In this document: positions 1,284 through 49,648 of the stretch, piece after piece | How positions within the stretch are numbered: position 1 is the first letter of the stretch | Layout: each line of letters starts with the position of its first letter | Assembly (NCBI GenBank): GCA_002269645.1 | Contig: NIVC01000093.1 | Location: forward strand, 682,001 to 746,000 | Direction of reading: 5' to 3' | Origin: Macrostomum lignano | Taxonomy: Eukaryota | DNA: 64,000 nt | The notes under the pieces: generated by a model | The model's database searches: none | What the model was told of the DNA's origin: nothing | The model's input: only the letters and a program-made list of their open reading frames with translations | Position numbers and translations under genes: made by a program

Positions 1284-4069
1284 TCAATCAAGCGGTCCGG
1301 CAGCATCTGACAGCTCAGCCTCGTACCGGTAGATCGGCACCCCTGGCAGGATGATCGACGTAAATTGGTCGGTCCTGATGAAGCCCAGCCTCTCGTAGAT
1401 GTCGACGGCGTATTGCTGCAGCTGCGTGGTGCCCAGCTGCATCCGCCGGTAGCCCCGGTTGGCGCACAGTCGCATGAGGCGCCGGCAGACGGCGTCGCCA
1501 ACTCCGTGGCCCCGGTAGGCGGGCAGGACGCCGAGGCGCTGCAACTCGCAGGTGTCGCCGTCCAGGTGCAAACTGGCAACTGTGCCGACAAGGGGAGGCT
1601 GCTGCTGGCCGGCTTCGGCTGCATTGGGGTGAATTTGGTGCCATTCTTCAGGGATTTTCAGTTTTTTTATTGAAATCGTCAAGGGCTTATAGCGATTTTA
1701 AGGTGAAGTGACTCGAGGAGACTCTAAAACGACGAGATTTCACAGTAGTAAGTCGCCAAAAAGTTTTCAAAGAGTCAATTTGCGGCGTTTTGATTGTCTG
1801 CGACTCTGAAATCACTCTGGGGCCGTAGAGTCGCATTTGAGGCGTTTTAACTTTTGATTGTCTGCGACTCTGAAATCACTCTGGGGCCGTAGAGTCGCAT
1901 TTGAGGCGTTTTAACTTTTGATTGTCTGCGACTCTGAAATCACTCTGGGGCCGTAGAGTCGCATTTGAGGCGTTTTAACTTTTGATTGTCTGCGACTCTG
2001 AAATCACTCTGGGGCCGTAGAGTCGCATTTGAGGCGTTTTAACTTTTGATTGTCTGCGACTCTGAAATCACTCTGGGGCCGTAGAGTCGCATTTGAGGCG
2101 TTTTAACTTTTGATTGTCTGCGACTCTGAAATCACTCTGGGGCCGTAGAGTCGCATTTGAGGCGTTTTGATTGTCTGCGACTCTGAAATCACTCTGGGGC
2201 CGTAGAGTCGCATTTGAGGCATTTTGATTGTCTGCGACTCTGAAATCACTCTGGGACCGTAGAGTCGCATTTGAGGCATTTTGATTGTCTGCGACTCTGA
2301 AATCACTCTGGGGCCGTAGAGTCGCCTCTGAGGCGTGCCAGAGTCGCTGAAGAATCACTGAGTTGCGTCTAAATTTAATGAATTATAATCGCATTTTGCA
2401 TTCATAATAACTCTATTTAGTCTACTCGAGTTAATAGAACGTAAGCGCTAACACAAGTACCTCTTGGACGATTCTACAACTCATGTGATGCACTCCTGAC
2501 TATAACAGTCACCTTTCCGGCACACTACAGTCGTTAAAAATTCAAAAAAGTCACCCAAGAGACACTATAGTGAGATATGTGCAATAATTCTTCTTTAGCG
2601 ATTCGGCGCTCACCAGAGTCCAGAAAGACTCCATACAATCGATTTGGGCCTTCGCCGCACCAGAATTCCGGGAACCTGGCATAGTCAGGCAGCTGCCGTG
2701 TGCTGATCAACCAGAGCAGCAGGCGAAGGCTGTGCAGCAGCGCTGTTGGCGCCAGCGCGCCGGCAAGGAGCCAGGCAACGGGCCGGCGCCACCGCCAAGC
2801 GGCCAGGGCGGCGAGGGTGGCGCAGGCGGTTCGAGTCTGCATGCGCGCGCGAATGAACATGTAACTATATATTGAACTTCTGGACCTCAATTATACAAAA
2901 CTGCTAATCGATAATGTACATCTAGCAGCACTAAATCGATAATGTACATCTAGCAGCACTACTCGATAATGTACACTGCTAACACTAATCGATAATGTAC
3001 ATCTAGCAGCACTAAATCGATAATGTACATCTAGCAGCACTACTCGATAATGTACACTGCTAACACTAATCGATAATATACATCTAGCAGCACTAATCGA
3101 TAATGTACATCTGCTAACACTAATCGATAATGTACATCTAGCAGCATTAATCGATAATGTTCATCTAGCAGCACTAATCGATAATGTACATCTGCTAACA
3201 CTAATCGATAATGTATTGTACATCTGCTAACACTAATCGATAACGTACATCTGCTAACACTAATCGATAATGTACATCTGGCAGCACTACTCGATAATGT
3301 ACATATAGCAGCGCTAATCGATAATGTACATCTGCTAACACTAATCGATAATGTACATCTAGCAGCACTTATCGATAATGTACATCTGCTAACACTAATC
3401 GATAATGTACATCTAGCAGCACTTATCGATAATGTACATCTGCTAACACTAATCGATAATGTACATCTGGCAGCACTACTCGATAATGTACATATAGCAG
3501 CACTAATCGATAATGTACATCTGCTAACACTAATCGATAATGTACATCTAGCAGCACTTATCGATAATGTACATCTGCTAACACTAATCGATAATGTACA
3601 TCTAGCAGCACTTATCGATAATGTACATCTAGCAGCACTAATCGATAATGTACATCTGCTAACACTAATCGATAATGTACATCTAGCAGCACTAATCGAT
3701 AATGTACATCTGCTAACACTAATCGATAATGTACATCTGCTAACACTAATCGATAATGTACATCTAGCAGCACTAATCGATAATGTACATCTGCTAACAC
3801 TAATCGATAATGTACATCTAGCAGCACTAATCGATAATGTACATCAGCTAGCACTAATCGATATACCAGACTACAATGAGCTCCGGCTACAAAAATATTC
3901 TTACCTGCCAACAGGTGGCAATAATCTCCGCCAACCGTCTATTAGTCCAAGAATACGGCATTAAAGCGACCCAAAAATACTCTTCAGCTTCCTTGGCCGT
4001 AAGCAGACGCATTCTCAGTTTGAGACCGGTCCGACACACTAGCTGCTCTTCCTTAGCCTGGTCTTCCAT
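1284..4069 (-). CDS. NAT8/Camello-like membrane-associated GNAT N-acetyltransferase, 3 exons (4069-3905, 2836-2614, 1645-1284), 249 aa
   Basis: GT-AG introns with matching phases (0,1). Hydrophobic segment in exon 2. GNAT motif A in exon 3 ([20 protein letters not shown]) and motif B ([13 protein letters not shown]). Confidence 0.88.
1771..2335. repeat. Intronic minisatellite: 64-bp units then 57-bp units, each with an internal 9-bp inverted repeat (tgcgactct...agagtcgca)
   Basis: Periodicity measured from recurring cgactctg positions (1801,1865,1929... then 2121,2178,2235). Confidence 0.92.
2905..3862. repeat. Intronic 27-bp minisatellite with two alternating variants (ctaatcgataatgtacatctagcagca / ...ctgctaaca)
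   Basis: Direct inspection; explains the repetitive [12 protein letters not shown]. Confidence 0.93.
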
Positions 4070-19879: not shown

Positions 19880-20630
19880 ACGCAGAGAGTAGCACAGACA
19901 AAAAGAGACCTAGCTAGACTTTGCGTGGACGCGTTCGCAGAACAATCGAGAGGGGCAAGTCATGGCGGACTGGGGGCTGAGCCCGATGGCCTGCAAGTCA
20001 GTCAGAAACGTATCTGCATTTAGCGTCACAGTTCGGCCTTGGCCACGGCGCAGGCGCTCAGTGGGCTGATGCAGGAGAGCCAGCGCCAGAGGATTTTGCT
20101 CGCCGCGGCCGTGGCTTCTTAGGCAGTGGCCAAGTAGCATCTGACGGCGTTTACGGATAGTGCAGCTGAGCGCGGGAACACCAGCGTGAGTCATCAGGTC
20201 CCTGGTCGGCACAGTATCAGGGTAGTGCACGCCCAGGGCATAGCAGAGCAGCGACCTGTAGTGAGCATCCAGGGCTTGCTGTCGCGTCGCAGTCATTGGC
20301 ACAGCCTCCATGCCATATAGGAGAATCGGCTCAATGGCAGTGCGGAAAAGGCGCATCTTTAGGTCGTCGCGAGCGGTTGAATTGAAGATGCTCCTGAGCA
20401 TGCGTGCCGCACGCCAGGCCTGAGTCCTCCTGTCAGAGACAATGGTGTCGGGGCTCAAGACAAGAGAGCCGAGGTAGCGGAAGTCTTCGCACACCTTGAC
20501 GACTTCTCCATTTGGAAGAGCTAGCGCAGGGGTAGTTGCAGTGCCCACGTGGAGCACCTCAGTCTTGGATGCGTTGATCACCAAGCCAACTCGGGTGCCC
20601 TCTTCGTAGAGTCTAGACAGCCCGTTGGGC
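19880..20630 (-). mobile_element. 5'-truncated non-LTR retrotransposon (RTE-like RT C-terminus)
   Basis: GLVINASKTEVL, FRYLGS, IEPILLYGMEA, RRQMLLGHCLR, RRGQGRTVT motifs in the 253-aa ORF. Confidence 0.88.
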
Positions 20631-21084
20631 AGCAGCCGGATTGCGACACAGAAGGGCAATGTCGTCAGCATGGGCGAAAGCAGGCAGCGAGACGGCGGGA
20701 TGTCGGGATCTCAAAGTGCCCGGAAAATGCAAAGCAGCTCAAGATATCCGGGAAATAGAAAACAAAGCAGGTTTTTTGCTTGGCAGTATCCGCGGGCGGA
20801 TATCGTAAGTGCCAGACAAAAAAACCCCGGATAGTCTAAAAGTGTAGCACCGGCTTCGCTGTAGACATCGCCTTCAACTTCCCGGCGCACTGCAGTTCAT
20901 TTTAGCATTCTTTCGGTGCACACCCAAAGTAAAGGAATTCCATAAGTTTAAATTTCGATAGATTAAATTCACTCTCTTTTTTCAATAAAAATTAACTTAG
21001 ACAGGCTGGAGGCTCCTAAATCAAGTTTTCGACGATCACAGAGAAGTCTATAGTAAAACAAATTCTCGAAGCAAAAAAGCAACC

Positions 21085-22326
21085 ATGCTGTTCTCAACTC
21101 TCGCTCTGATCCTTCTAGCTGCCGTCTCAAGTGTCGTTGGAGGTAAGAATCTGTATTCTTAATGAGTATGGATTTGATTTTATGTATTTTCGTAAAAAAT
21201 ATAATGCCTTAGAATTATGACTAGCGATTTAAGCCCCCCCTCCACCGTTAGGGTGGCAACGGAGAAATTGAAATTAAGCATCAAAGTCTCCCTTCCAGCC
21301 ATATGGCTTAACTCAAACTCTCCCTTTGATCTACCTTTGGGTTTGTTGGCCAATCAAAAACATCCAATTGACCTTGGCATCTCAGCAACCAACCCCCCAT
21401 GAGCAACAGCATTCAGCAATGCCCCCATGCATTTGTAAAGCAGGTTTTCATACCTACTTCAATAAGATGCATCTTAATTTCGTCTTTATAATTCAGACCA
21501 AGTGGCATTTTGATCGCTCGCTGATTGACTTGTCCTGTAGTTGTGTCTGTTGTGCCCCTGTGCGGCAAACTTGATCTCTCTCGTACTGACCCCATTTTAA
21601 TCTTCCCCAAACATTTCCGGGAGCGCCTCACGTTTGCTTCATCAGCTGTCAAAAATACACCGAGTCGCACTTCTGGCGTTCTTTCAGCGCCTTCAAAAGG
21701 ATGCTATTTTTTGGAAAAGTTATGAGCGCTTGTTGAGCCATGAATTGACGTACAATTTCAAAATGATGAACCAGGAAACGTGTGCCAGAGCGTGCATGGA
21801 TTGGCGATACAAATATTTTGGTCTAGCAAACGGCGACCGATGCTACTGTGGCAATGAAATAAGTAAAGCTTTAAAATTCGACAAAAAACTTTGCAATCAG
21901 CAATGCAAGAATGCCGATTGGGGGCAAAAGTGCGGCGGCCTCATTGCAATGGAAATATTTGATTTGATTGTTAAGGTGCCGGAAACCCGGCAGACCTCTG
22001 CCGTTTTTTCAGCGCCGTCAAAAGGATGCTATTTTTGGCGAAGTGATGAGATCTTGCTGGAATATAAATCCACGAACAATTTCACAATGATGAATCAGGA
22101 AACGTGTGCCAGAGCGTTCATGAAGTGGTCATACAAATATTTTGGTCTAGCAAACGGCGACCGATGCTTCTGTGGCAATGAAATACTCTTACCTGAAGAT
22201 ATGAAATTAGATAAAACATATTGCAATCAGCAATGCAAGAATGCCGATTGGGGGCAAAAGTGCGGCGGCCACTTTACAATGGAAATATTTGATTTGATTG
22301 TTAAGATGCCGGAAACCCAGGCCTGA
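21085..22326 (+). CDS. Secreted WSC-domain protein 1: signal-peptide exon 21085-21142 plus tandem WSC exon(s) (acceptors before 21688 and 22013); +1 T frameshift in the first WSC copy (~21707-21712)
   Basis: MLFSTLALILLAAVSSVVG|gtaag; two GCYFW...NQETCARAC...YKYFGLANGDRCYCGNE...CNQQC...QKCGG domains. Confidence 0.85.
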
Positions 22327-25464: not shown

Positions 25465-28374
25465 ATGGCCGCGCATCGAGGTCTACAGGCCAGTTGTATT
25501 CTTCTAGTAATATTTGCAACGCTCTCAGAAGCCTGCTATAGAGGTAGGTGAATTACGTCAACAATAATGATGCTTTTATTACAGTGTAAATCCATTTCAT
25601 GTATAAGACATCGGTTTTAGTGTATACTTTTGGTACTCTTTCAACTTTATTTATTTGTGAAAGTTTTCACTAGGGTGTTCGCTAATCTGCTAAAGTCCAC
25701 TAATTTTCAAGCATATTCCTGTCTTCAGGCATTCCGTCTCATAGCTATAAAAGGGCCATATGATTCATTAATAATGTTTTTTGTTGACTAGAAGGACTGA
25801 TGCATTAGCGAATCCTGGCATCAAAACCATCAATTTTCAAGAGCCAGGTGTCTTAAAAGACCACCTCGATCAGTTTTTATACTTCTCTCTCTTTCTTGGT
25901 CGAGTTCTCCTTCTATCCTCTCCCTTTGTCTTCTTTCATTTGTTTTCCCCTTTACCTCTTTGTAGCCATGGGGCACCAATGGTGTTATTGGTCCTTGACC
26001 ACTCCCATAGTGAGTTGCATATAATAATAGTAATAATAGTAGTAGTTGTAACAATATAACAATAATTCAAATCCATAGTAGCAAAAAACAACCACAGGGG
26101 CATGAGGAATGGGGAGCTTTTAGGTCGGGGAGATTATTCATAGGGATTTATTTCTGTTTCTTCAAGAAGACGACGCCACACTTAATACCCCATGCCTCTA
26201 TTTAATGCGTAGCTCTACCCCCTCCCTCAATTTTTGGCGCCCCTGTTTCTATAATTTTATCACTCCGCCATGTTAACTACATGCAAGTGTACTTTACCGC
26301 CAATTAACACCGAATGCACTTTAAGCAAAAATATATTTAGGATAAATAATGAACTGGCACTTCGCGAGAGTCTGTTTGTGTGTGCCTTCGTGTACTCTGA
26401 GTTTTTGTGTACTTTGTGTACTTTGCATTCTAGAAGGAGCCTTAGTGCCAAGTAGTTCTGAGGAACACTCGTAACATTTTGTGTCCTTGAGCAAGACACT
26501 TAACTCTGCATTGTCTTCAGTTCACCCAACTGTAAAATGGGTGCCAGCATTAGCTGGGGTAATTGAGGCTGTGTGGCGATTCCCATCCCATCTGCTGTCG
26601 GTTGCACATCTTGTCCATAGGGTAGCTGTAACGAAAAACTTGGTATGTATACAGTGTGTATTAAATTTAAAAGCTAAGCCCAACCCTTTGCTCAGACGAC
26701 TTGATCACGTGATGCACCATTACTCTCTCATTGTGCCTGCATTAAATTTAGAAGCTGAGACCAACCCTTTGCTCAGACGACTTGATCACGTGATGCACCA
26801 TTACTCTCTCACTCTGCCTGCATTAAATTTAGAAGCTGAGACCAACCCTTTGCTCAGACGACTTGATCACGTGATGCACCATTACTCTCTCATTGTGCCT
26901 GCATTAAATTTAGAAGCTGAGACCAACCCTTTGCTCAGACGACTTGATCACGTGATGCACCATTACTCTCTCATTGTGCCTGCATTAAATTTAGAAGCTG
27001 AGACCAACCCTTTGCTCAGACGACTTGATCACGTGATGCACCATTACTCTCTCATTGTGCCTGCATTAAATTTAGAAGCTGAGACCAACCCTTTGCTCAG
27101 ACGACTTGATCACGTGATGCACCATTACTCTCTCATTGTGCCTGCATTAAATTTAGAAGCTGAGACCAACCCTTTGCTCAGACGACTTGATCACGTGATG
27201 CACCATTACTCTCTCACTCTGCCTGCATTAAATTTAGAAGCTGAGACCAACCCTTTGCTCAGACGACTTGATCACGTGATGCACCATTACTCTCTCATTG
27301 TGCCTGCATTAAATTTAGAAGCTGAGACCAACCCTTTGCTCAGACGACTTGATCACGTGATGCACCATTACTCTCTCATTGTGCCTGCATTAAATTTAGA
27401 AGCTGAGACCAACCCTTTGCTCAGACGACTTGATCACGTGATGCACCATTACTCTCTCATTGTGCCTGCATTAAATTTAGAAGCTGAGACCAACCCTTTG
27501 CTCAGACGACTTGATCACGTGATGCACCATTACTCTCTCACTCTGCCTGCATTAAATTTAGAAGCTGAGACCAACCCTTTGCTCAGACGACTTGATCACG
27601 TGATGCACCATTACTCTCTCACTCTGCCTGCATTAAATTTAGAAGCTGAGACCAACCCTTTGCTCAGACGACTTGATCACGTGATGCACCATTACTCTCT
27701 CATTGTGCCTGCATTAAATTTAGAAGCTGAGACCAACCCTTTGCTCAGACGACTTGATCACGTGATGCACCATTACTCTCTCATTGTGCCTGCATTAAAT
27801 TTAGAAGCTGAGACCAACCCTTTGCTCAGACGACTTGATCACGTGATGCACCATTACTCTCTCATTGTGCCTGCATTAAATTTAGAAGCTGAGACCAACC
27901 CTTTGCTCAGACGACTTGATCACGTGATGCACCATTACTCTCTCACTCTGCCTGCATTAAATTTAGAAGCTGAGACCAACCCTTTGCTCAGACGACTTGA
28001 TCACGTGATGCACCATTACTCTCTCACTCTTCACTTAGCAACTTCGCCAACACACAGAAATCGCTGCGAGTCTGAAGAAAACAAAGCCAAAGATCGAATA
28101 CAAAGGCTGCTACCCGTCCGAGCAAATGGAAACGGTTCACAGTCCGCGCAAGAAGGCCATGGTTCGGCTTCAATCGAAGGACTGCAACGAAGAGTGCAAG
28201 AGGACGCACAAACCGAACGGTGGTTTTATTGGCCTCGGACGCGGCCACTGCTGGTGCGGCTACAAAGGCATCGGCGATCTGGCGGCCAATTATAATTGCG
28301 ATGTGGACTGTCCGGGCAATGTCCGAGAAGCCTGCGGCAGCACCAACTTCGTGTCCGTGTACACCATGATCTGA
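25465..28374 (+). CDS. Secreted WSC-domain protein 2, exons 25465-25543 and 28058-28374
   Basis: Signal peptide MAAHRGLQASCILLVIFATLSEACYR|gtagg; phase-1 acceptor cacacag|aaatc; YKGCY...CNEEC...GHCWCG...CDVDCPGNVREACGSTNFVSVY. Confidence 0.82.
26478..26640 (+). mobile_element. SINE copy 2 (body and 3' part, no tRNA head)
   Basis: gtgtccttgagcaagacacttaac...gccagcattagctg matches copy 1; ctgtcggttgcacatct matches copy 3. Confidence 0.75.
26660..28030. repeat. Intronic 81-bp minisatellite x~17, each unit with the palindrome ATCACGTGAT
   Basis: Period measured at 81 bp; two variants (attgtg/actctg). Confidence 0.95.
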
Positions 28375-35135: not shown

Positions 35136-36524
35136 CATGCAGTAAAAGAAACAACTCACCTATTTAAAAATATTGAACTCCGATAGTTAAACAAAAATTT
35201 AAAGGATTTGATTTCCTCACTAAACTGTGAGCCGATCTGGCGCAGTTAAGACTTTAGAGAAAGAAATTCTGACCAAACTGTTGCAAGTATTTATATAAGC
35301 TAAGCTATGTCATTTGTTGCTCCGCGATCGGCACTTTTTATTAGCTATAGTTAAACAGCTATAGTTGAGATTGAATGACTTGCTCGCCGAGCTTCGAGAT
35401 AGCCCACACACACGCGCACACATGCATTTTCGGACACACTTTGCATAGAAACACACACACACAATATGCACAGAAAAAATATATATGAACTCGAGTATAA
35501 AAAACGAAAATGGCACTAGAAGAGTGGTCTATCTGTATCAATAAGAGTCTCTGCCCTAGAGATAGCTCGTGATAGCTAGAAATCATTTAGTTCTGACTGT
35601 GAACTGCGACCACGCCTTCAGGCCGAAATGGCAAGAAAGAACGATATAATTTACTTAGCAATTTTTCGCAATTTTGATAGTCAGAGTTGGCGGGCGGGTC
35701 GTAAAAAGGCCCTGAAACCTTTTTGCTTTTTTTGCTTATCGTCGAGATTAAAAAGGAACAGACGCGGCATGCGAAGAAATTTCAAAGGTATTCATTTTTC
35801 TGGGTTTTAGGATAAGTCGATTAAATGGTACACATCTAAATGCATTAGCGAGGAAGGACGTTTTCAGTTTTTTCTAAGCACTGAATTCACAAGCCATAAA
35901 TTAAATTAAGAGAAGAAGTTTCTTGAAAGATATTTAAAGCTGAGCTCACACCAACCATTTGTTCATTAGCAGAAATATAAAGGTGTTCCTGAGATCTCGC
36001 TATAGGACATCACAGGACATCAGGTTGTGGCTGCATTTGCCAGGCACCGCTAACCTCCAGGGAAACATCCATAGCGAGGAATCCTCGGCCCAACACACGG
36101 AGCTCTCCGACGTTTTCAGGCCCGAGAATGTCTGCCAGCTCGTCCGATGCTCCATTACTCCATTGCTTACTGCGGGTGCTTTCTTCATCCGCATTGAGGG
36201 ATGCTGAATCTCCATTAGCAACAAGTAAGGAAATACAATGATGCACTTTAGCCTAAGCAAAGAAAAACGCTCTAAAAGTTCCGGAAACATTAACCAAGTT
36301 TTAACATATGCATCGATATATTGACATTGCAAGCAGATAAATGGTGCCTTTATCAAGGAAACCATATGATTTTAAAAGCTTTGCTGAGCAGACCAATAAG
36401 CGATCGTGGATCCAATTAAATAATCTGAGAAGCCATATGCTTAAAAGACTTAGCAGGAGACTCAGCATCAGACTCAAGACCAATACCCGTCACATTTGTA
36501 CTTGTCTTGATATACTCAAATTAG

Positions 36525-37253
36525 CAATGATCCTTGAGATAGGGCTGCTCACCTGAGCCTGCTGGCTGTGTGCCAGTGCAGGGCCGGAGACACCTGGACT
36601 CGCATGCAAGGTGCACTGCCTGTCTGATGCTGCCGCATTCCGCATCTCCAAGGCATTCACGGAACAGCACTGCAGCATTCAGGAAACGGATGCAATTCCA
36701 TCCGGCATTCCCGTTGCCCAGTTCGAGCCGGCCTCTCTCCGCTGCAGTCTCTTCCGCTACCAGTCCGTGTGTCGCGACCTCGTCTCTGGCGGTGCGAGCA
36801 GCGACTGCCGAGTGCTCATCCGATTTCCGATCAAATATCCGGCTCAGCTCAACCCGAAGCTCACAAACGTGTGGCTCGGAGACGACATGTCTGCATTTGA
36901 GAATGTCGTGTGCCAGGCAGACGAAGAGACCAACCGAATTTATCCGGTCGGAGTCCAGTGGACAGAGGAGGGCGCCGCGTTCGATGGGAGCAGCTCGTTT
37001 CTGGCCATGAACAAGAGCGACATCGGGTTCGGCACAGGCGTCACGGTGCTGCTCAGGATTAAGCGGCAGCCGAAGGTGCAGATCTTCTTTGAGTTCCTGG
37101 ACTGCACCAATTTTGAGACGGGACTCCCGCAGTACCAAATCCGAGAGCAAAACGCTGCTTCTAAACTCTTTTTAGACGCCTTTTTGTCGACGGCCTCCTT
37201 CAGCCTGACTATACTGGTGTCAACTTCATCTCGCTGCCTCAGTTCTGCTTCAG
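36525..37253 (+). pseudogene. Copy A of the PAN/LamG-like lectin gene (frameshifted, ~46-codon internal deletion, 3'-truncated)
   Basis: Homologous to 38765-39835; in-frame stop/frameshifts at the 5' end; KLFL-DAFL deletion; homology stops after QFCFR codons. Confidence 0.8.
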
Positions 37254-38764
37254 GGGTCGTTTCACAAACCCTAATTCTCACAGCGTCGAAACCAAAACCT
37301 TTCATAAGACCTAGAGCTTGTGATGAATGTGCTTCTCTCAGCCTGCTCTTAAATTATTTTGCCTCCCCTCTTGTTTGTGAGGCACTCGCCTAGCGGGTCG
37401 CTTTCACAAGCCTCCCCCCTTCTGGGGCTTGCGTAAGCCTCTCGTTGTCTGATTGCCGGAGACTCGGTCAGAGTAGCCCCTTTTGTTTTCTTGTTGTGCT
37501 CTCAACCCCTCCCCGGCCCTTTGCGATGTACCCTCGGTGCAGGCTCAGCCAGTTGGCGCTCTCTGATTGGCTGCGAGTCCCCGGGCTCGTATGTCTGGTG
37601 CCTCCGCCCTTATTATGCCTGCGCTGGCCCGCCTATTATATGAGGCCTTTGCGGCCCCTGTTTCGGTCGACGCTGCCCCGTTGCACTTTGTATCTGCAAC
37701 CGTGCGACTGCGCTTTGTTTCTGCGACTTTGCAACTTTGGCCGTTCAGCACGCGAAACGTGAGCACTTACTGTCTTTGTTTTTCGGGGTTGCTGCTCAGG
37801 GCCTAGCCGGGATTAAGAGCAGCGTTGTACGCCGATTCCCACCCCAACCAAGCTCAACGTCGTCCGCTCAGCTGGAGGCCATCGTGCGTCGTACGCTCGA
37901 TCGGCCTGATCTCAACCGACTCTGCGTCGTACGCGAGTAGGTCGGACGACTGTAGCGCTAAGGGTCAGTACATGAACCCGGGTCAGGTGCACCTGAGCAG
38001 TGTTCTAATTGCTATGGTTTGGCCATAGATATGAATTTGAGCACAGACTGCTCTTCATTTTTCTAAGTTGAACTACTATGCGCATGCGTTAAAAAGCTAA
38101 ATTGTTATATCAAAGAGAGCTCGAAAAGCTCGGCTCAGAATTGAGCGAAAATATATGTACGAGCTAACTAAGCAGCTGCGAACTGAAAATCCGAAAACCT
38201 CAGCCTCAGCCTCCGAAAGCCTCAGTCATAACACTAATTAGCGTTGAAAACAGACGCTAAAGGAGTAAAAAAAGAAGTCATTGGTGACATGTCAGCACTT
38301 GCTCTATATTCCTTTTATATTTCGAAAGTTGTTATAATAAAGCTTATTCTTACTCTATCCTGTCCCGATTCCAGTTGATCCTGAATCTAAAATCAATTCT
38401 AGTTGTCAGCTGAACTTGAACAATTCGGCCTGTAGGTTTAAAACAAAAGCAAAATAATTCAGAGCAGAATTGATTTGCGAAATATTATTAAAGAAGTTAA
38501 AGTAAATATTGAGAGAAGATTTGGAACATGCTAACAAGACTGCGCTGTAGCTATAATTAAATAATTTGGTCGGCTGTAAACTTTGAAGTAAGGCTTAAGT
38601 AACATTCACTTTCAAAACTCATTTCAACAGCAGCTCATTGATCCGATCCAGAATATCTTTCAAAGTTCAGGCAATTACAAAATTACAAAAGGAGCAGGCT
38701 TTCAATATTGGTTAAAAAAGTTCAACTGCTTGTTAATTCGCCAAAAGTCACACAAAGCCTTCCT

Positions 38765-39835
38765 TCAGCCGATGACGGCAAAGAAGTCGCGGATCTCGCT
38801 CTCAGACATGGTGACGCTGCTCATAGCGATGGCCCGGACAGTGCCATTGAACATTTGGGCGTTATTGAGTCGCTTGCCGAACCTGAAGCAGAACTGGGGC
38901 AGCAGAGTATAGTTAGAATTAACAATCAAGTTGAACGAAGCCGTCGGTAAGAATGCGTCGTTCACAAACGCTCCCCACGAGTCAGCCGATAGAGTCGATG
39001 TGAAGCCGATGTTCACCCACTCGTTGGCGTTCGAAGTCAGCGGAGTTGTCGAAGTTTGATAGCGTGTGGGAGTAGCGCCGGCTTCGGTTTTGATCACAAA
39101 AAGGAGTTTAGAAGCAGTGTCGTACTCCCAGATACGGTGGTAGAATGGTCCGGTTTCGAAGTCAGAGCAGTTTAGAAAATCGAAGAAGATCTGCACCTGC
39201 GGCTGCCGCTTCATCCTGAGCAGCACCGTGACGCCTGTGCCGAACCCGATGTCGCTCTTGTTCATGGCCAGAAACGAGCTGCTCCCATCGAACGCGGCGC
39301 CCTCCTCTGTCCACTGGACTCCGACCGGATAAATTCGGTTGGTCTCTTCGTCAGCCTGGCACACGACATTCTCAAATGCAGACATGTCGTCTCCGAGCCA
39401 CACGTTTGTGAGCTTCGGGTTGAGCTGAGCCGGATATTTGATCGGAAATCGGATGAGCACTCGGCAGTCGCTGCTCGCACCGCCAGAGACAAAGTCGCGA
39501 CACACGGACTGGTAGCGGAAGAGACTGCAGCGGAGAGAGGCCGGCTCGAACTGGGCAACGAGAATGCCGGATGGAAACGCATCGGTCGCCTGCATGCTGC
39601 AGTGCTGCTCCGAGACCGCCTTGGAGATGTAGAATGCGGCAGCATCGGACAGGCAGTGCACCTGCACCTGAGTCCAGGTGTCTCCGGACCTGCACATGCA
39701 GGCAGGCATCAGAGCCATCAGCTCAAGCGCCGACAACAGTATCCACCAAGCTAAAACGGAGCAATATATTGCAATGCACCTTTCAATATTTATTGGCTAA
39801 AATGAACTTGTATTTTATTGTTTCTTACCTTGCAT
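38765..39835 (-). CDS. Copy B (intact): secreted protein with a Cys-containing PAN/Apple-like N-terminus and a concanavalin A/laminin-G3/pentraxin-like domain; exons 39835-39829 and 39750-38765, 330 aa
   Basis: ATGCAAG|gtaag micro-exon and phase-1 acceptor give MQAWWILLSALELMALMPACMC; GAAFDGSSSFL, TVLLRMK, WVNIGFT, FVND, FNGTVRAIAMSSVTMSESEI are typical LamG3 patterns. Confidence 0.8.
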
Positions 39836-40907
39836 TTGAGCCGTGGAGTGTGAAGTTCTCAGCAGTTTTTGACAGATGCCGAGATGCGGCTCTCAAATTT
39901 AATGCTGCTTAGCTGGTCTTAAATAAGGAAGGCTTTGAATTTTTTGCGTTTCTTGGATGGCTTGGCTGATTAGCCATTCTGCTTACAATGAAACCCAAGC
40001 CAAGGACATACATACAATGCGTATGGGCGCATCGGCTGGCTGCATCTCCAAACTGCACTGTTAGTCCCCATTCCCCATCCGCTGACAATTATGTAGTGAG
40101 TCGCAGGCTTTGCAGCTGTGTGGGATATTCTCGTACAGAAAACTGTCTCATTTTCCTCCCCCATCGCAAGTGGGATTCTTCAAGTTGCCTCTCCAGTTGC
40201 TTAGGTTTTCCTCAGCTTGGGTGTAGGAGCGAGACAATAGAGAAATCCCACCTGGGTAGCAACAATCAATAAAAAGAAATTAAAACAAATTGGCTCTGCA
40301 GAAGAATTGGCTCTTGAGTGTCTCATCCTTGTTAGTTGTTTAATGCTGCTGAGTGATGCCGAACAGCAAGCTATATTCCCTATTAATACGTATAGCCTAT
40401 TATAGATTTTTATTTGAGCCATGATTACCCCCGAATTGGAATTTTATTCTATATTGTACAGAAACAAATCCGCTGACAAACGATGCTAGTTGAACTAATA
40501 GTACGAGAGTAAAAATTAACACCTTGACTATTAAATGGCACTAACTTTGAAGAGATGGCGCTCTCGATCTGGGAAGATGCATCAAAAAACCCAGGGACAA
40601 GCAGAATAAAAGCATTCAAAAACAGCGAAACTTTGAACAGCACGTGTACGCAATGAAACCGCAGTTCAAGCAGGCGGAATACGACGAAAAGCTACTCCCA
40701 GTTCAAGTAAAAATAGTAATATTTGCTAACAACCGTCATGGTGCTGCATCATGGTACTATCAGAAAACTTTTTTTAAAGCGTATTTTAGTAATATTTAGG
40801 AAACTTCCAAGCTTCAAAGAGTGATCTTAAACCTTTAGATTTTCGGAATAAAGCCCTTGATCAATTCTGGAAGCTTGATAAACGACATTTAAAGAATTAG
40901 TAGCTGA

Positions 40908-41908
40908 ATGTATGCAGGTCAGACACAAATTCCTTATTCTGTTTCAGTCTCAGATATATTTAAAAATACGAATTTACTTCCGCAGCTGCACTTGCTATTC
41001 CGCTTGTCGTTCTGACGTTGATGGCTCTGATGCTTGCCTGCATGTGCAGGTCCGGAGACACCTGGACTTGCAGGCAACGGATGCGTTTCCATCCGGCATT
41101 CTCGTTGCCCAGTTCGAGCCGGCCTCTCTCCGCTGCAGTCTCTTCCGCTACCAGTCCGTGTGTCGCGACCTTGTCTCTGGCGGTGCGAGCAGCGACTGCC
41201 GAGTGCTCATACGATTTCCGATCAAATATCCGGCTCAACTCAACCCGAAGCTCACAAACGTGTGGCTCGGAGACGACATGTCTGCATTTGAGAATGTCGT
41301 GTGCCAGGCAGACGAAGAGACCAACCGAATTTATCCGGTCGGAGTCCAGTGGACAGAGGAGGGCGCCGCGTTCGATGGGAGCAGCTCGTTTCTGGCCATG
41401 AACAAGAGCGACATCGGGTTCGGCACAGGCGTCACGGTGCTGCTCAGGATTAAGCGGCAGCCGCAGGTGCAGCTCTTCTTCGATTTTCTAAACTGCCTTG
41501 AATTTGAAACCGGACCATTCTACCACCGTATCTGGGAGTTCGACGCTGCTTCTAAACTCCTTTTTGTGATCAAAACCGAAGCCGGCGCCACTCCCACACG
41601 CTATCAAACTTCGACAACTCCGCTGACTTCGAACGCCAACGAGTGGGTGAACATCGGCTTCACATCGACTCCATCGGCTTACTCGACGTGGGGAGCGTTC
41701 GTGAACGACGCCAATTCTTGCCGACGACTTTCTTTAGCCTGACTATTAGACCTAATTATCCTATATGCTGCTTCAGAACTGCTTCAGATTTGGCAACCGA
41801 CTAAATGATCCACGATCGTGTTCAAAGGAACTGTGAGGGCTATCGATATGAGCAAAGGCACCATGTCTGAGGGAGAAGATCCGGGATTTCTTCGTGGTCA
41901 TCGACTGA
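40908..41908 (+). pseudogene. Copy C of the lectin gene (76-nt frameshifting deletion near the 5' end, several 3' frameshifts)
   Basis: Micro-exon ATGTATGCAG|gt (40908-40917), acceptor before 40986; alignment to copy B. Confidence 0.8.
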
Positions 41909-42343: not shown

Positions 42344-42457
42344 GTGTAGACGACAAAATCAGGTATTGAAAAGATATAAAAGGACTAAAGGATCAATGTA
42401 CAGTATAGCAATGTTCATAATATTTTTTGTGGAATGACAGGACAGAGAAAAAAAAGG

Positions 42458-42493
<36 letters not shown>

Positions 42494-43366
42494 GCGCATG
42501 CGCCCCAAATGTACTCTAGCTTAGAACACCGACAGCTGTTCACTCGCACCTCCTCCAGATAGTTGGACATTGAGAGTGGGTTTGTGTAACTTAATGTGCA
42601 GAGCTTCAAGAATGTTAAGTTTATGCTCATTTTTGTTGTTGTCTATGACCTTGAAATGAGAGGTTATGTCTGGCTCATCACAACAACCATGGCATTGCAG
42701 CAAATGTTCATGAATCGGAGAGTTTCGTTGCCTATGTTCCTTGGCTCTCGTGAGTAGGTGTCGCTTGGTTTTACCAATGTAGGTAATGCTCTGGTCAACA
42801 GAGCAACGAAAACGATAGATGACACCTGCCTTGAGAGCACATGGAACACGAGACTTTAAACTCCCAACAAATTGACTGACTTTATGAGTACGGAACACTA
42901 CATGAATCTGAGTCTTAAAGAATTTTTGGCAAGTTTTGCGAATTTGCCTCTTAAACACAATCGAAGAGTTGCCCAAAAAAGGAAGAGTCAAGATTGGTTC
43001 TCCTGGTTCTCTATCTGGCCGCTTACGTTTAAGCTTTTTTTCAATTTTTTCATCTAAGAAATTACCAATAACCTTCATGATGTAGTTGATAGGGTATCCA
43101 TTGGCAGTGAGAATATTGATAATGTTGGCAAACTCGTTGTGCAGCAACGACCAAGAGCAACATACTGTATAGGCACGATGAAGCAGACAACGAATGACTC
43201 CCGTCTTCCATTCCCTGGGGCACAACGCCTGGAAATTAAGCATCAATTTAGTGAATGTGGGCTTGCGATACACTTCCTGTTTTTTAATCATGTCCAACTA
43301 TCTGGAGGAGGTGCGAGTGAACAGCTGTCGGTGTTCTAAGCTAGAGTACATTTGGGGCGCATACGC

Positions 43367-43403
<37 letters not shown>

Positions 43404-43483
43404 TTTTTTTCTCTGTCCTGTCATTCCACAAAAAATATTATGAACATTGCTATACTGTACATTGATCCTTTAGTCCTTTTATA
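42344..43483 (-). mobile_element. 5'-truncated Penelope-like element (RT thumb plus GIY-YIG) with an inverted ~198-bp copy of its own 3' end
   Basis: VYRKPTFT, LLHRAY, NGYP, LPFLG, GVIYRFRC...YIGKTKRHLLTRAKEH, LEALHI; IR 42372-42570/43290-43486; flanking repeat tctagtaaattt. Confidence 0.92.
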
Positions 43484-44104
43484 TCTAGTAAATTTATTTC
43501 GTTTTTGTTTATGATTCTGCTGGATCTAATTGGGTTAAATGCACATTGTTACTATAATATTTATTATACTATTCTATTGTTTCTAAACTATTTCTTTGGA
43601 TATTTTCAAAACTCTCTGGCAGTCTCATTTTTGACATGTCTTAACGTGATTACGTGAACTTTATATTCGGTCCATTTTCAGTGAATGAGTTTTAGTAGGA
43701 CAGTCTACCATTTAAGTAACCGACTTAAAATTGTAGTTTTTTTGTAATACGAACTACTAACTGCTATTAAGAAGTCGAGAAGGCAGCTCTCGTGCTCTCT
43801 TATTGATTTTTTAGACTATAGTCTATAGTAAAAGCATTTGGACTATAGTAAAAGCATTGTTAAAGTTAATATATATTAGTTGCCGTCTGTATCAGTTCCA
43901 TAGTTCTAAAGGTCCGCATTTTTTCAGTCCTGAACATAATTTTGCTGTTTAGCCAACTTATCTGCCTTTCCCCATAAATAAATCGAATTATGGAGTCAGA
44001 CATTGTGAGGTAAGCAAAACTTTTAGTTTTTATCCAGTTCTTGTCATTTGTGTTTTTAATGCTGAATTTAATAGTATAATTTCTATAAATAGGCCTGTGT
44101 TTGC

Positions 44105-45893
44105 TAGAGGTTGGACAGGATTAAAATCTTTGGGCGGGATTGGGATCAGGAATAATTTTTTTCTTGGGATCAGGATCAGTATTGGGATTTGGGAATTGGG
44201 ATCAGGTCTTTTAGTGTATTGTAGCTTGTGGGTCCATATAAAGATAAACAAAATTGAGCTAAAAATGTCAAGATGAACAACATTGTAGAATACAACAAAA
44301 TTAATGCAAAGTTTTGTAACCAACAAATTAATAATTTAATAAGTACAGCATTCCTTCAGTTTACGATCCCTGAAATTGGTGACGATCCCCATAAGAAAGA
44401 TACGCAAGAGTAAGAAATTCGTGTTTTTTAATCATTTTTTAAACCAGCACAGAAAATCACTCCAAGCCTTTTTATTTTTCTGTTGTCAAATGATCAAATG
44501 CCAACCAGAATGAAACGATGCAAAGAGATCTGTTCATTCGCATACATTCATCAAATTGAAAGAGTTGCTCATTACAGAACTCGTTTCAGAACTGTTCCAT
44601 GCAGGGGATCCTATATATCTACTTCGGTTTACAATTATTTAAATGGTAGAAATACATGTAAATGATCATGAACCAAAGGTAGGGGGTTTTAGTGTACTAT
44701 TTCACATCTTAGAACTATTCCATGAAGACAATCCTATATATCCACTTTGGTTTACGATCATTTAAATGGCAGAAATACATGTAAATGATCATAAACCAAA
44801 GGTAGGGGGTTTAAGTGTACCATTTCACATCTCAGAACTATTCCATGAAGACGATCCTATATATCCACTTCGATTTACGATCATTTAAATGGCAGAAATA
44901 CATGTAAATGATCGTAAACTGAAGCTGAGGAGGGGTGGCAGCATGCAGAGAATAATAAAGCATCAAGTTACTTAGGAGCGCACGTTAACTCAAGATGACA
45001 TTTCAATCGCCAACAAGCCAGCAAATAAATATATGACTACATATGTCTTCGACACCCCCCTCAGCTTTGGTTCACGATCATTTAAATTAAAGAAATACAT
45101 GTAAATGATTGTAAACCAAAGCTGAGGGGGAGTTGCAGCGTGCAGAGAATAATAAAGCATCAAGTTACTTGGGAGTGCACGTTAACTCAAGATGACATTT
45201 CAATCGCCAACAAGCCAACAAATAAATATATGACTACATATGTCTTCCACACCCCCTCAGCTTTGGTTCACGATCATTTAAATTGAAGAAATACATATAA
45301 ATGATCGTGAACCGAAGTGGATATATAGGATCCTCGTCATCGCAATGCCATTAAAGAAACCATTTGTCGGCTATTCCATTCAGTTTTTTCTAATGTAACG
45401 AATAAGCTCAGTTTAACAATTTTTGTTTATTTCAAGCAAGCTATGATCATTTATATGAAAAATTACATGGGGATCGTGAACCGAAATGTGGGTGGAAAAA
45501 TGATCGTAAACCGAAGGAATGCCATAAGTACAAGGTAAAACAAAATACATTCAAGTAATCACTACTAATACATTCAAGTATAATTATCGTATAATAATAA
45601 TTATATATTATACATATAAGTATATAATAATAAATATTATATACGTATATACGTATATAATAATTATATATTATAAGTATAATATTCAAATATATATAAA
45701 TATATAATTCTATATAATTCTAAATAATAGGCCTATAGGCCTATATAATTCTAAAATTCTATAAATTTTTAATCAAAAGACCTGTTCCCGATTCTTGTGT
45801 TTTTTAGGGTCAGGATTCTAGTCCCGCAAGAATCCAATTTTCCTTGGGATCCCAAGATTTTGGGATTGGGATTGGGATCTCGTCCAACCTCTA
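44105..45893. mobile_element. Non-autonomous hAT-like element, TIR TAGAGGTTGGAC, 8-bp TSD gtgtttgc
   Basis: TSD at 44097-44104 and 45894-45901. Confidence 0.88.
44347..45523. mobile_element. Merlin-like non-autonomous element nested in the hAT element, TIR (G)GCATTCCTTC(A/G)GTTTACGATC, 8-bp TSD ataagtac
   Basis: TSD at 44339-44346 and 45524-45531; internal ~120-bp direct and inverted repeats. Confidence 0.8.
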
Positions 45894-46086
45894 GTGTTTG
45901 CATGCTTTTCTTATTTGCATTTGCATGCTAGTTGTACTAAGCAAATTTTGTGTATTAGGCCCTAGTGTTTGTTTGTTTCAAAATGCAGCATGCATGACAT
46001 GCAACTGAAAGAATATGTAGGCCTAGTTGTCAGCATGTACAAGTGGCATGCAATATACATTATGATGTGCTGATATGAGCCATAAC

Positions 46087-46332
46087 CCACACTCAGGAAG
46101 GTGTCACGTGTGCGCGGGAATATATTTCAGCGTATTTTTGGAGTGTGTGCTGTGCGCGAAGCTAAAATATGAATTTTTGCGCCGAGTTCTACATTTGTTT
46201 ATTGACAAATACATAGCTAGAGTACTAATGCGCCGTAGCACTAAAAACTAATGCGCCGCGCCACTTTGCGCATATTTTTTTGTTGATATGCGCCGGAATT
46301 TTCCGCCATAATGTACACCTTCCTGAGTGTGG
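46087..46332. mobile_element. 246-bp MITE, TIR CCACACTCAGGAAGGTGT, TSD gcca(t/c)aac
   Basis: 18-bp TIR; 8-bp TSD with one mismatch. Confidence 0.7.
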
Positions 46333-46389
46333 GCCACAACATACATACATAACTGCTTGACAACCCAGATACCATAAATTGTGATAGAC

Positions 46390-46830
46390 TAGGGGTAAGT
46401 CATAAAAATATCTATCCAAAAATACAAATGTAATACTAATTAGATGATGAGGCAATTAGTCTTAATAAGACTGTCATAAGCCTAGTTAGGCCCCTACTCC
46501 TGCCATTTACCCAAACTTGCATTAATTTTGCTTTAGGGTTTCTTTTAAATGTAAGTTGCATGGCCAGTGTAAACATACATGCGCAACCTCCAAAATTCGG
46601 TCGGCCATGCAACTTAGTTTTAACAAAATGCGACATAGTTTTTGGCCAAAAATGCAACTTACATGTAAAAAAACCTTGCGTAAGTAGCGTAAAGCAAATT
46701 AATGCTATTTTGGGTAAACGGCAGGAGTTACTATGACTGTCTTATTAAGTCAAAATGCCTCGTCAGCTACTTAGTACTACTACTTGGGTATTTTTTGGGT
46801 GGGCATTTTTGCAACTTCCTACTTCCTTGT
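46390..46830. mobile_element. Old fold-back element with long degenerate inverted arms
   Basis: Matching blocks cttaataagactgtcata/tatgactgtcttattaag and ctcctgccatttacccaaa/tttgggtaaacggcaggag. Confidence 0.55.
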
Positions 46831-48690
46831 TTGGCCGCCAAATCGGTCAGCTGGATCGGCCGACTTGGCCGATTATTGCGCATGTATGAGTGTAAATCAG
46901 GCAGGTTGCACATGTATAAGCCCAAAGCTAGATTAATGAATAATGTTAAAGCTATTTTTAGAAAATGTCTTTACAACTAGAGGATAAATTAATAAAGTGT
47001 TTTTGCTAAAGATATTTAGTAGAATGTATCTATGCCATTGAAAATAGTAGCATTTGTTTACTAGGTATATGTACATATAAACTATATTGTTAGATTAGCT
47101 GTAATAGAAGCTTATATTATTTAAGTTCAAACTGCTAAAAAGGTCATTTATTGTCACAACTGCAAAGAGGCCTTGTATTGTTGCAAGTAAAAAAGGTCCT
47201 TTATAGTTGCAACTGTGATCTGCATTATTGGCATCAACATGCGTTTAATTGGAGTTGGTTTGGTTTAAAGCATTCTGGCATGCACTTAGCATGATCTAGA
47301 CTATGGTGCTTGACTTGATTTACTTGACTTTGCCACAGGGCTATTAGAGGGGACATAGTGGTAATGCACAAATGCCAATGAATTCTGCTAATCCCTGAAT
47401 AGCCAACAAATTGCTATGGACAAAGGGTTGGCATCACCTAGTGAGGTTCCCCAGTGTTGCCAGCAGCTATGATGCTCTCTAAAAAAGAGAGTTCAGCTTC
47501 ACAGGTGGCTTAGAAATAGCGCATGAGCTGATAAACATTTTTAGCTCTGCATGATTTAGTAATTAATATGTGTGACCCAAGGTAAGCAAGTCTGGCTGGC
47601 ATAAATATGGGAAAAATGCTAACAAAATGTTTAGTGGTTTTGTAAGGTTTAATGAAATGAAGGGATAGAAAGTGCTAGCTGGTGGTTCTTATTTGATTTG
47701 GTTTGTATATAAGCCAGGCAGTAGAAGAAGGTAAAGATTATTCACAATGGGCACCATTTATTTATAGTCATCAGGAGCATTGCTAGAGACTTCTAGAACA
47801 TTCTGTGCATTATAACAAAACAAAGATTAACTATGCATTCCTTTTGGATCTGCATTAATTGTATTGCTAACTCACTATAACTAATTATACAATGAATATT
47901 TATAAATATAAGTATTGAAATTAGTTTATGTAAGAGAACTGTCTAGAATTTAAGTTGTACTCTATTGGGGAAATTTCTAGAAAGAAATGATTATCATACT
48001 GTATCAAACTTTCAAAGGTCAATACAGTTTCATCATCTAAGTTACATAAACTACAGATGATGTTGGTGGCACTATGGTGCATATGCTATGGACTTGTTTA
48101 GTGTTGGAATCCATTTGTTTATTGTTAGTGTGCATTTGTATATTTGGTTTGGGGCATTCCATTGTGCACTTAGAATGATCCAGACTATGGTATCTTTAGT
48201 ATATACAAGGGTTGTTTAATAAGTTTGTGGAAAAAGTAACTTCCTTTAAAGTTGCAATTCTTATTCAATTTCGACTTGGCCAATCTGCCTCTGAGTGCTT
48301 GCAGATGTTTCAAAAAGCCTTTGGTGATAAAGCCCCATCCTAGATGATGGTATACAAGTGGTTTGGCTGATTTTGTTCTTGCTGCCTGGAGCTGGATGAT
48401 GACAAATGCAAAGGCCATCCAAATTTGGCCATTACAAATGCAACAATGGCCAGTGTCCGAAAACTGCTTGATAAAGATTAATAAGTGACTATTTGCAAAA
48501 TGGAGAAACATGTTAGGATTTTGGATTCAAGCCCCATTTCTATCTTGCATGATCATCTGGGCATGAGAAAAGTGTCTGCGCGCTAGGTGTCCCACCACTT
48601 AAACTTGACCCAAATGCAAGCTCGTGTTGAGTTTGCAAACTTCATCCTCAACAAATTCAATGCAAGGGCTTCAAATTGATGGACAATATC

Positions 48691-49044
48691 TCAGGGTTTT
48701 TTGTGCAAAATTTGTACTCCTGCGACATTTTTTTCAATTGGCACAAATTATTTGAAGGCTAGGTGCTACTTTGGCACATATTAATTTTCAATTTGGCATA
48801 TCCTCTTTTTTGATTTTTGAGTTTTAAATGTTGAAAACTTTTTTATTTTTTATTTCAATTTTTCATTTATTTCTTTTTTGTTTGCTTATATACATTTTGT
48901 GACAAATGTAATTAAAACCATTTTAAATGCATGACAAGTAAACAATTTAAAAAATGTTTCATGGGCACATTGAGTTTCAAAATGGCACAAGTTTTTTAGG
49001 TCAAGGTGCCATATGGCACATGTTTTCAAATGAAAAACGCCCTG
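48691..49044. mobile_element. hAT-like MITE, TIR CAGGG(C)TTTTT, TSD acaatatc
   Basis: TSD at 48683-48690 and 49045-49052; subterminal ggcaca repeats. Confidence 0.8.
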
Positions 49045-49060
49045 ACAATATCCTGACAGG

Positions 49061-49648
49061 CCCTATTAGAATAAATGTTAAAAACCCGCAGACGCGTGCT
49101 TCAGAAAAGAGTCAAACTATTTTACCGCACTTTAGGATTATTAGAGATGTTCCAAAAGATCTGCAGTTTCATCGAAAGCAAAATTCGCTAACTTTCCAAA
49201 ATCAAAATTGAAATTTCCCAAAATCATAATTCAGAAAAACAAGTTTAGTATGAGCAACACTCACTTCTTTACTTTCAATTTACTGCTTAAGCAAAAAGTA
49301 ATACATGTATATGTAGTAGAAAGTAGTTTTATTTTTAGTGACTTTTTAGACACTACCAAAATTTTCACTTCTAAATTTTTTTCGAAATTGAAATTTGCTC
49401 TAAAAATTTCAAATTTTGGAAAATTGAAATTGAATTTTTGGAACATCTCTAAGCTTAATAAATTACAAGTGTATAAGCCCCTTCAACAGAGGTATTATAC
49501 CCATTTCCATGCATATGTATTTGCTAGAGCAGCAGCCAGTAAGAAAGGGCAGCACGCAGGCAATGTGCCTGTGTGCGCACTGCGCTTTAGAAAAAATTCA
49601 AATGTGTGCCGGACACCGTCCGCGGTTTTACAACTTTTTCCTATAGGG
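49061..49648. mobile_element. 588-bp MITE, ~33-bp imperfect TIR CCCTAT..., TSD ctgacagg
   Basis: TSD at 49053-49060 and 49649-49656. Confidence 0.82.

Follow-up and report, generated by a model that had tools for sequence, protein, structure and literature searches.

Layout of the cluster and state of its copies

The 64,000-nucleotide (nt) window analysed here, positions 682,001 to 746,000 of contig NIVC01000093.1 of the flatworm Macrostomum lignano, carries a small cluster of three related gene copies, A (+), B (-) and C (+), of which A and B stand tail-to-tail and B and C head-to-head (Table 1; all coordinates are those of the window). B is an intact gene for a predicted secreted protein, A and C are decayed, and a central block of 378 nt, hereafter the core, is nearly identical in all three while the sequence around it has diverged to different degrees. 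This mosaic probably reflects gene conversion between the copies.

Searches with copy B (blastn and tblastn) found no copies beyond A, B and C in the window. A repeat search recovered an inverted match of 617 nt between B and C (97% identity), an inverted match of 516 nt between A and B (94%) and a direct match of 300 nt between A and C (98%), with the arms 2.0 kb apart for A-B and 1.3-1.5 kb apart for B-C. When the window was compared with itself by blast, the flanks and spacers proved unique, so duplication was confined to the gene body.

The product of B, a two-exon gene, has 330 amino acids and starts MQAWWILLSALELMALMPACMC. An exon with the ATG and an intron are present in B, C has a damaged exon 1 and the intron, and A has neither. 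C keeps its intron and must therefore have arisen by duplication of DNA, which rules out a retrocopy origin. The leader of A has stops in all frames and no in-frame ATG left, and a +1 insertion at 36608 splits it from the body; further downstream, 138 nt of the part corresponding to the predicted jelly-roll domain are deleted (junction 37173/37174), more indels follow, and homology is lost at 37262. In C, exon 1 (ATGCAG) lacks one of the bases found in B, and the hydrophobic leader, good in other respects, is thereby shifted out of frame. A frameshifting deletion of 76 nt (junction 41068/41069) removes the equivalent of B 39670-39595, and the last ~200 nt of C contain indels of +3, +2, +2, +8/-6 and +1, at least four of which shift the frame. 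A first-pass annotation of this DNA had described B as an intact minus-strand gene lying between two plus-strand pseudogenes, A and C, both inverted relative to it. The coordinates bear out this arrangement, and the frame, splice sites and lesions agree with the status assigned to each copy.

Mosaic identity and breakpoints

Identity was measured segment by segment after A and C had been projected onto B. Over the core, A matched B at 373 of 378 positions (98.7%), C matched B at 372 (98.4%), and A matched C at 373 (98.7%). On the 5' side of the core, identity was 79-87% for A-B and 94-98% for C-B. In the 84 nt directly 3' of it, A and B agreed at 72% (57 of 79 aligned positions) and C and B at 93%; the following 138 nt are absent from A by deletion and 97% identical between C and B, and over the final ~200 nt C-B identity was 78% (149/190).

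The maximum chi-square method placed the A/B breakpoints at A 37089 (3') and A 36695 (5') and the C/B breakpoint at B 38949 (~C 41719), and the observed value was reached in none of 5000 permutations for any of the three. Fisher tests on the segment contrasts gave p = 5e-14, 7e-10 and 8e-16, and clustered C-B differences start at C 41712. Furthermore, the three-way site patterns in the core were star-like, with two sites separating A from B and C, three separating B from A and C, and three separating C from A and B, whereas those in the flanks mostly set A apart from B and C (counts in the same order: 7/0/1 in segment N1, 5/2/0 in N3 and 18/2/2 in mid1) and the sites that set C apart were isolated. 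The segments thus have different histories. The GC content of the core (59%, versus 51-61% in the remaining coding sequence) held no usable signal of GC-biased conversion.

The first-pass annotation had seen by eye a ~375-nt core of ~99% identity with about 4 A-C differences, which is essentially right (378 nt and five differences by count), and its breakpoints at ~37075 and ~41690 lie within about 15-30 nt of ours (37089 and 41712). The identity of 65-70% that it gave past the breakpoints was too low, as we measured 72% for A and 78% for C. It had also read three distinct 3' haplotypes. The 3' end of C is indeed distinct, though over its last ~200 nt only, while the 3' part of A is mostly gone, and B and C are ~97% alike along a much longer tract (B 39720-38961). 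Its argument that duplication age alone cannot give such a mosaic is confirmed by the breakpoint tests and the site patterns. Judged from these alignments, the mosaic cannot be explained unless the copies have undergone recombination or gene conversion with one another.

Table 1 Features of the three-copy cluster
Feature	Coordinates	Strand	Basis or remark
Copy A, pseudogene fragment	36525..37262	+	blastn/tblastn to B; degenerate leader, N-domain and core kept, jelly-roll deleted/truncated
A N-terminal block, 79-87% identical to B	36559..36711	+	Segment identities; same type in P0001a protein
Core in A, 378 nt, identity 98.7% with B and 98.7% with C	36712..37089	+	
A diverged jelly-roll remnant, 72% to B up to 37173; short 3' fragment	37090..37262	+	Deletion junction 37173/37174
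Unrelated 57% GC block replacing A 3' end	37263..37990	.	Unique in window
Copy B (intact gene)	38765..39835	-	
B exon 2, stop codon 38765-38767	38765..39750	-	Open frame; acceptor 39752-39751
B intron, 78 nt, GT...AG	39751..39828	-	
B exon 1, 7 nt, ATGCAAG, phase 1	39829..39835	-	
Core in B, residues ~66-190	39183..39560	-	
B/C common tract, ~97% identical	38961..39720	-	Broken in C by 76-nt deletion of B 39670-39595
B-C head-to-head spacer between start codons, 41% GC	39836..40911	.	Unique in window
Copy C, pseudogene with exon-intron layout kept	40912..41908	+	
C exon-1 remnant ATGCAG	40912-40917	+	
C intron	40918-40985	+	
C exon-2 remnant	40986-41908	+	
Core in C	41103..41480	+	
C decayed 3' end, 78% to B, several frameshifting indels	41701..41908	+	Remnant stop 41906-41908

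Silent sites and selection

In the core, A and B show 2 synonymous differences against ~43 expected if it were of the same age as the adjacent block, an expectation scaled from 9 synonymous differences in the adjacent 79 aligned nt. The A-B mismatches in that block fall on codon positions 1/2/3 as 9/1/12, a pattern indicating that the divergence built up while both lineages were functional genes under purifying selection. An old, diverged block thus lies directly beside a near-identical core, so the copies are old paralogues and the core is young; the N-terminal block of A is an older or unconverted haplotype (Table 1). As far as the aligned copies tell, selection cannot explain the identity of the core, because two dead copies, and synonymous sites as well, have been homogenised. 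In the predicted structure the core runs from the middle of the N-terminal domain through a linker modelled with low confidence into the first strands of the jelly-roll; it does not coincide with a structural module, as would be expected of a tract at the DNA level and not of a protein module.

Protein and predicted fold

Copy B matched the Pfam family Laminin_G_3 (PF13385) below threshold (expectation value (E) 0.024, 15.2 bits, cut-off 27.6), and 6 of 19 family members matched it as well, the best with E 1.2e-5. An AlphaFold2 model built on a 19-sequence alignment had a mean predicted local distance difference test score (pLDDT) of 78.9 and a predicted template modelling score of 0.69; the model from the single sequence was useless (pLDDT 37). 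Foldseek against the PDB gave 280 matches (E<=1e-3), the top-scoring of which were concanavalin A (ConA)-like jelly-rolls with E ~2e-7 and probability 1.00 over 205-250 columns. They include the lectin-like sub-domain of the clostridial neurotoxin binding domain, the lectin domain of trypanosome trans-sialidase, a GH43 accessory domain and the LamG/TSPN domain of NEL. At 8-14% identity, this resemblance of a predicted model is generic and says nothing on toxin function. A profile search of PDB sequences gave no match to any solved structure.

The N-terminal ~100 residues, a Cys-containing domain, had no database match, and a PAN/apple-like fold would be a guess from the Cys pattern alone. A signal peptide is probable at the N-terminus of B, to judge by its sequence, and at the aligned position the N-termini of relatives P0006 and P0016 clearly resemble signal peptides. 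With the fold taken from the predicted model, B is supported as a secreted LamG-fold protein in which a Cys-rich N-domain is followed by a ConA-like/LamG jelly-roll. B shares with the ConA-like lectin/glucanase superfamily, and with Laminin_G_3 (PF13385) in particular, a jelly-roll of ~200 amino acids and the C-terminal motif GTVRAxAxxxxxMSExEIxxFF; it differs in falling under the Pfam threshold and in joining the fold to a novel Cys-rich N-domain. The term lectin in the first-pass annotation is thus apt at the level of fold, given the Foldseek results and the Laminin_G_3 matches in the family, and goes beyond the evidence in its functional sense, since that evidence concerns fold only.

The same pattern across the family

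A HMMER search of 1.84 billion representatives yielded 24 relatives, none of them identical to B. Ten were looked up: six are M. lignano models (one assigned by UniParc accession only), three are short metagenome contigs of the Joint Genome Institute and one is from Trypanosoma cruzi. A repeat of the homology search with the family profile returned only P0001-P0003 and P0016, and a 44-mer of the core had no match in a metagenome scan. Exact-product look-ups with P0001, P0002, P0003 and the ATG-started ORF of B likewise gave no match. The family of B, A and C is an uncharacterised one of the Macrostomum lineage; our literature searches turned up no account of this lectin-fold family, nor of gene conversion in Macrostomum.

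A and C were translated conceptually and placed in one alignment with B and the UniRef models, with P0001 counted as two units. Residues 66-190 were 98-100% identical across all seven copies. Residues 24-65, in contrast, were 55% identical to B in P0002 and 34% in P0003, the cores of which were 98-99% identical to it. For this N-terminal segment there are at least four haplotypes, each of them a patchwork; P0001a, for example, is of A-type at residues 16-47 and of B-type at 53-65. In distant relatives, identity was 33-49% in the core block versus 21-32% in the rest. A core of ~99% beside flanks of 34-55%, but of only 33-49% in distant relatives, is a contrast that constraint alone cannot give. 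As the same invariant core is found in the unlinked P0001-P0003, the pattern is family-wide and not special to the inverted triplet, and from the alignment the core seems to be homogenised across loci and not just within the triplet. Some 70% of the M. lignano assembly is reported to be present as three paralogous copies with ~98% small-scale identity (PMC10733133), the same level as in the core of A, B and C, and on this sequence evidence some of the other gene models may be homeologues of the A/B/C cluster.

Several of the public models are themselves irregular. The P0001 model is artefactual, joining two units of N-domain plus core between ...KRQPQ and CRTGDTW, and P0004 and P0021 are chimeric, with the family domain fused to clathrin and to cytochrome P450, respectively. 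The source names of the models (UBC core, COIA1, DOMON) do not fit the aligned part. The T. cruzi relative, P0015 (KAF8280146.1), is a hypothetical protein of 2022 amino acids with a HMMER E of 9e-13 and no single stretch reported; taken with the Foldseek matches to trans-sialidase, it suggests a shared ConA-like domain type.

Other features of the window

Just downstream of copy C, a 258-amino-acid open reading frame (ORF; 42521-43297, -) contains a GIY-YIG nuclease domain (Pfam E 1.1e-5). It lies between inverted repeats of ~125 nt with (GA)n (42365-43493), and the region looks like a fragment of a Penelope-like retroelement. Another ORF of 253 amino acids (19910-20671, -) appeared by eye to be a retrotransposon remnant and had no Pfam match. 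An open frame of 230 amino acids at 21634-22326 (+) carries two WSC (carbohydrate-binding) domains (Pfam E 5e-24) and probably represents an exon from a further gene for a secreted protein, and a GNAT acetyltransferase exon lies at 1284-1682 (-).

Minisatellites are extremely dense in the window; together with a long (GTTA)n array and the transposon fragments they are in keeping with the M. lignano genome (PMC10733133). More than 15 minisatellite arrays with periods of 20-197 nt are spread across 1-35200 and 44500-54400. An 81-nt unit repeated 16.9 times with 98% identity (26660-28026) runs in frame within a 604-amino-acid ORF (26481-28295) and is either a 27-residue protein repeat or a coincidentally open minisatellite. 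A (GTTA)n microsatellite array of 9.1 kb (~90% matches, 54893-64000) runs past the end of the window and explains the strong GC skew there.

Probable gene conversion between linked paralogues and its alternatives

We consider ectopic (interlocus) gene conversion among paralogues that are old, inverted and closely linked to be the best explanation of what the aligned sequences display, and a probable one. B would be the working gene, with A and C its decayed paralogues in a small cluster of alternating orientation (-> <- ->). The three copies would be old, the divergence of their unconverted parts (72-85% identical) having accumulated partly under purifying selection, and their central parts would later have been overwritten when homologous repair between copies 1-3 kb from each other led to non-allelic conversion. 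A tract of ~750 nt (B 39720 to about 38950, ~97%) would be common to B and C, and one block of ~380-400 nt (98.4-98.7%) to all three, so that at least two tracts are implied. As the most constrained block, the core may have retained an identity high enough for continued recombination, while the flanks would by now be too diverged for conversion to begin. The outcome would be passive concerted evolution with islands of divergence, and not a programmed diversity generator. Conversion as the process, together with its direction and timing, is what we infer from the observed mosaic. Interlocus conversion has been documented for adjacent inverted hsp16 and hsp70 pairs in Caenorhabditis elegans (PMC3966223), and concerted evolution with islands of divergence is on record for adjacent paralogues, direct as well as inverted, of other animals (PMC3966223, PMC3728101).

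Nevertheless, some points weigh against this account. The comparison is confined to three copies in a single haplotype, so that the direction, number and age of the events are tentative, and chimeric partial duplications could yield the same picture. M. lignano assemblies are also known to contain collapsed or mosaic sequences (PMC10733133). Finally, C-B divergence is 1.6% in the core and 4.2% in the rest of the tract, a marginal difference (p=0.058), so that nested tracts of different age are suggested and not shown.

A chimeric origin without conversion would have recent partial copies of the middle of B joined to older decayed fragments. The setting is suitable, as the region is dense in minisatellites and transposon fragments, with the GIY-YIG ORF by C and a GC-rich block abutting A, and the deletion junctions show active rearrangement. 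However, the high-identity blocks lie in register in collinear genes, with homology on both sides of each breakpoint, which indicates replacement by homology and not insertion; the joining would moreover be needed twice, in frame and in register, and we regard such an origin as unlikely. An artefact of assembly, by mis-joining or by consensus polishing across the subgenome copies of a neopolyploid, appears to us quite unlikely. M. lignano assemblies are fragmented, collapsed or mosaic sequences in them are acknowledged, and ~70% of the sequence lies in three ~98% copies (PMC10733133); single-base indels, too, could be long-read errors. Yet subgenome copies would be ~98% alike throughout, flanks included, without drops to 72-78% inside a gene, reads are not mis-mapped across 25% divergence, and base-calling errors account neither for the 76- and 138-nt deletions nor for the loss of the 3' end of A. 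No gap interrupts the sequence (no N in the window), and the flanks and spacers occur only once in it. A palindromic long-read artefact is rejected, as the arms differ, the flanks are distinct and the spacer of 1.1-1.5 kb is unique. Constraint on the core at the nucleotide level, for instance from an overlapping RNA or an antisense element, would agree with the core being the best-conserved block of the wider family and with a long antisense ORF over the core of A (36521-37150, -). That ORF is not kept in B or C, however, two dead copies would need to be equally constrained, and distant relatives reach only 33-49% in the block, which makes this the kind of explanation we would assign hardly any weight. 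Scans of the whole window against Rfam (gathering thresholds) and for tRNAs gave no match, including in the block at 37263-37990, which holds no tRNA gene and no RNA family above Rfam gathering scores; an annotated RNA as the reason for the conservation of the core is ruled out by these null scans.

The first-pass annotation had gone further and read A and C as silent donors whose variants are copied into B, in the soma or the germ line, so as to diversify a secreted recognition protein. Recombination between the copies is the part of that reading that stands. The arrangement invites the comparison, with one intact gene between inverted copies that are putatively promoter-less or broken and that share a common anchor block and differ in their flanks; the family as a whole combines an invariant core with at least four patchwork N-terminal haplotypes, and the protein is probably secreted, with a predicted lectin-type fold. 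But a cassette system that reshuffles B is very unlikely in our judgement. There are two donors only and no array in the 64 kb, the variable parts of the donors suffer from frameshifts, the 76-nt and 138-nt deletions and truncation, and no A- or C-derived tract is detectable in the single B sequence. The visible effect is homogenisation, in that two dead genes have received or retained a conserved core, and the pattern is not tied to the arrangement, since P0001-P0003 lie elsewhere. We know of no dedicated diversification mechanism in flatworms. A long tract copied from either donor would destroy B. Nor would crossing over serve the purpose: a B-C crossover in the repeat would invert the spacer and join the body of B to the damaged 5' end of C, and an A-B crossover would hand B the deleted 3' part of A, so that B would in either case be inactivated and not diversified. 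Point differences could in principle still reach B through short tracts, as they could in any gene that has a pseudogene next to it.

Comparison with known systems

The pseudo-V genes of chicken immunoglobulin loci, the vlsE cassettes of Borrelia and the variant surface glycoprotein (VSG) genes of trypanosomes draw on 15 to several hundred donors. The cluster resembles them in that a putatively expressed copy lies beside homologues that could not be expressed, some of them inverted, with conserved anchors and variable flanks. It differs in having two donors, with variable segments that are out of frame or deleted, in showing no variant tract in B, and in having no known dedicated machinery.

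For the fibrinogen-related proteins (FREPs) of Biomphalaria and the Sp185/333 genes of sea urchins, conversion or recombination has been put forward as a diversifier (PMC3313920, PMC3091723, PMC12074976). These are lineage-specific secreted families of lectin type, with patchwork members and clusters amid repeats, and are alike in this to the family of B, A and C. The domain there is fibrinogen, whereas here it is ConA-like/LamG, and the family of B, A and C is known from sequence alone. It is conceivable, though we give it very little credence, that B, A, C, P0001-P0003 and their homeologues form a FREP-like recognition repertoire of flatworms, in which the ~380-nt core would anchor the shuffling of variable N-terminal and jelly-roll segments, dead copies included, in the germ line or the soma. 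If selected shuffling did lie behind the invariant core and the patchwork flanks, it would be a new diversity-generating system of invertebrates.

To return to interlocus conversion between linked paralogues, the reading we favour, the functional gene CYP21A2 and its pseudogene CYP21A1P are a pair with such conversion. Further cases are hsp16/hsp70 and fog-2/ftr-1 of C. elegans (PMC3966223) and human segmental duplications (PMC4467073, PMC3790853). The present cluster shares with these systems the spacing of a few kb, tracts of 10^2-10^3 nt with sharp edges, islands of divergence outside the tracts, the homogenisation of silent sites and pseudogenes, and a pseudogene neighbour that is a potential deleterious donor. 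On this reading, the cluster would be a clean, textbook-style case of ectopic conversion, pseudogenes included, in a neopolyploid flatworm genome that is hard to analyse, and identity-based dating of duplicates in this genome would be misled by conversion tracts. The public gene models of the family are truncated or chimeric, which matters for annotation, and the analysis defines an uncharacterised family of the Macrostomum lineage, probably secreted, with a Cys-rich N-domain and a predicted ConA-like jelly-roll. What sets the cluster apart from the known pairs is that its family is uncharacterised and flatworm-specific, and that the homogenised block is apparently also present in unlinked or homeologous copies of a neopolyploid genome. 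On this reading it adds one more case, from an uncharacterised family of flatworm genes, to a well-known process.

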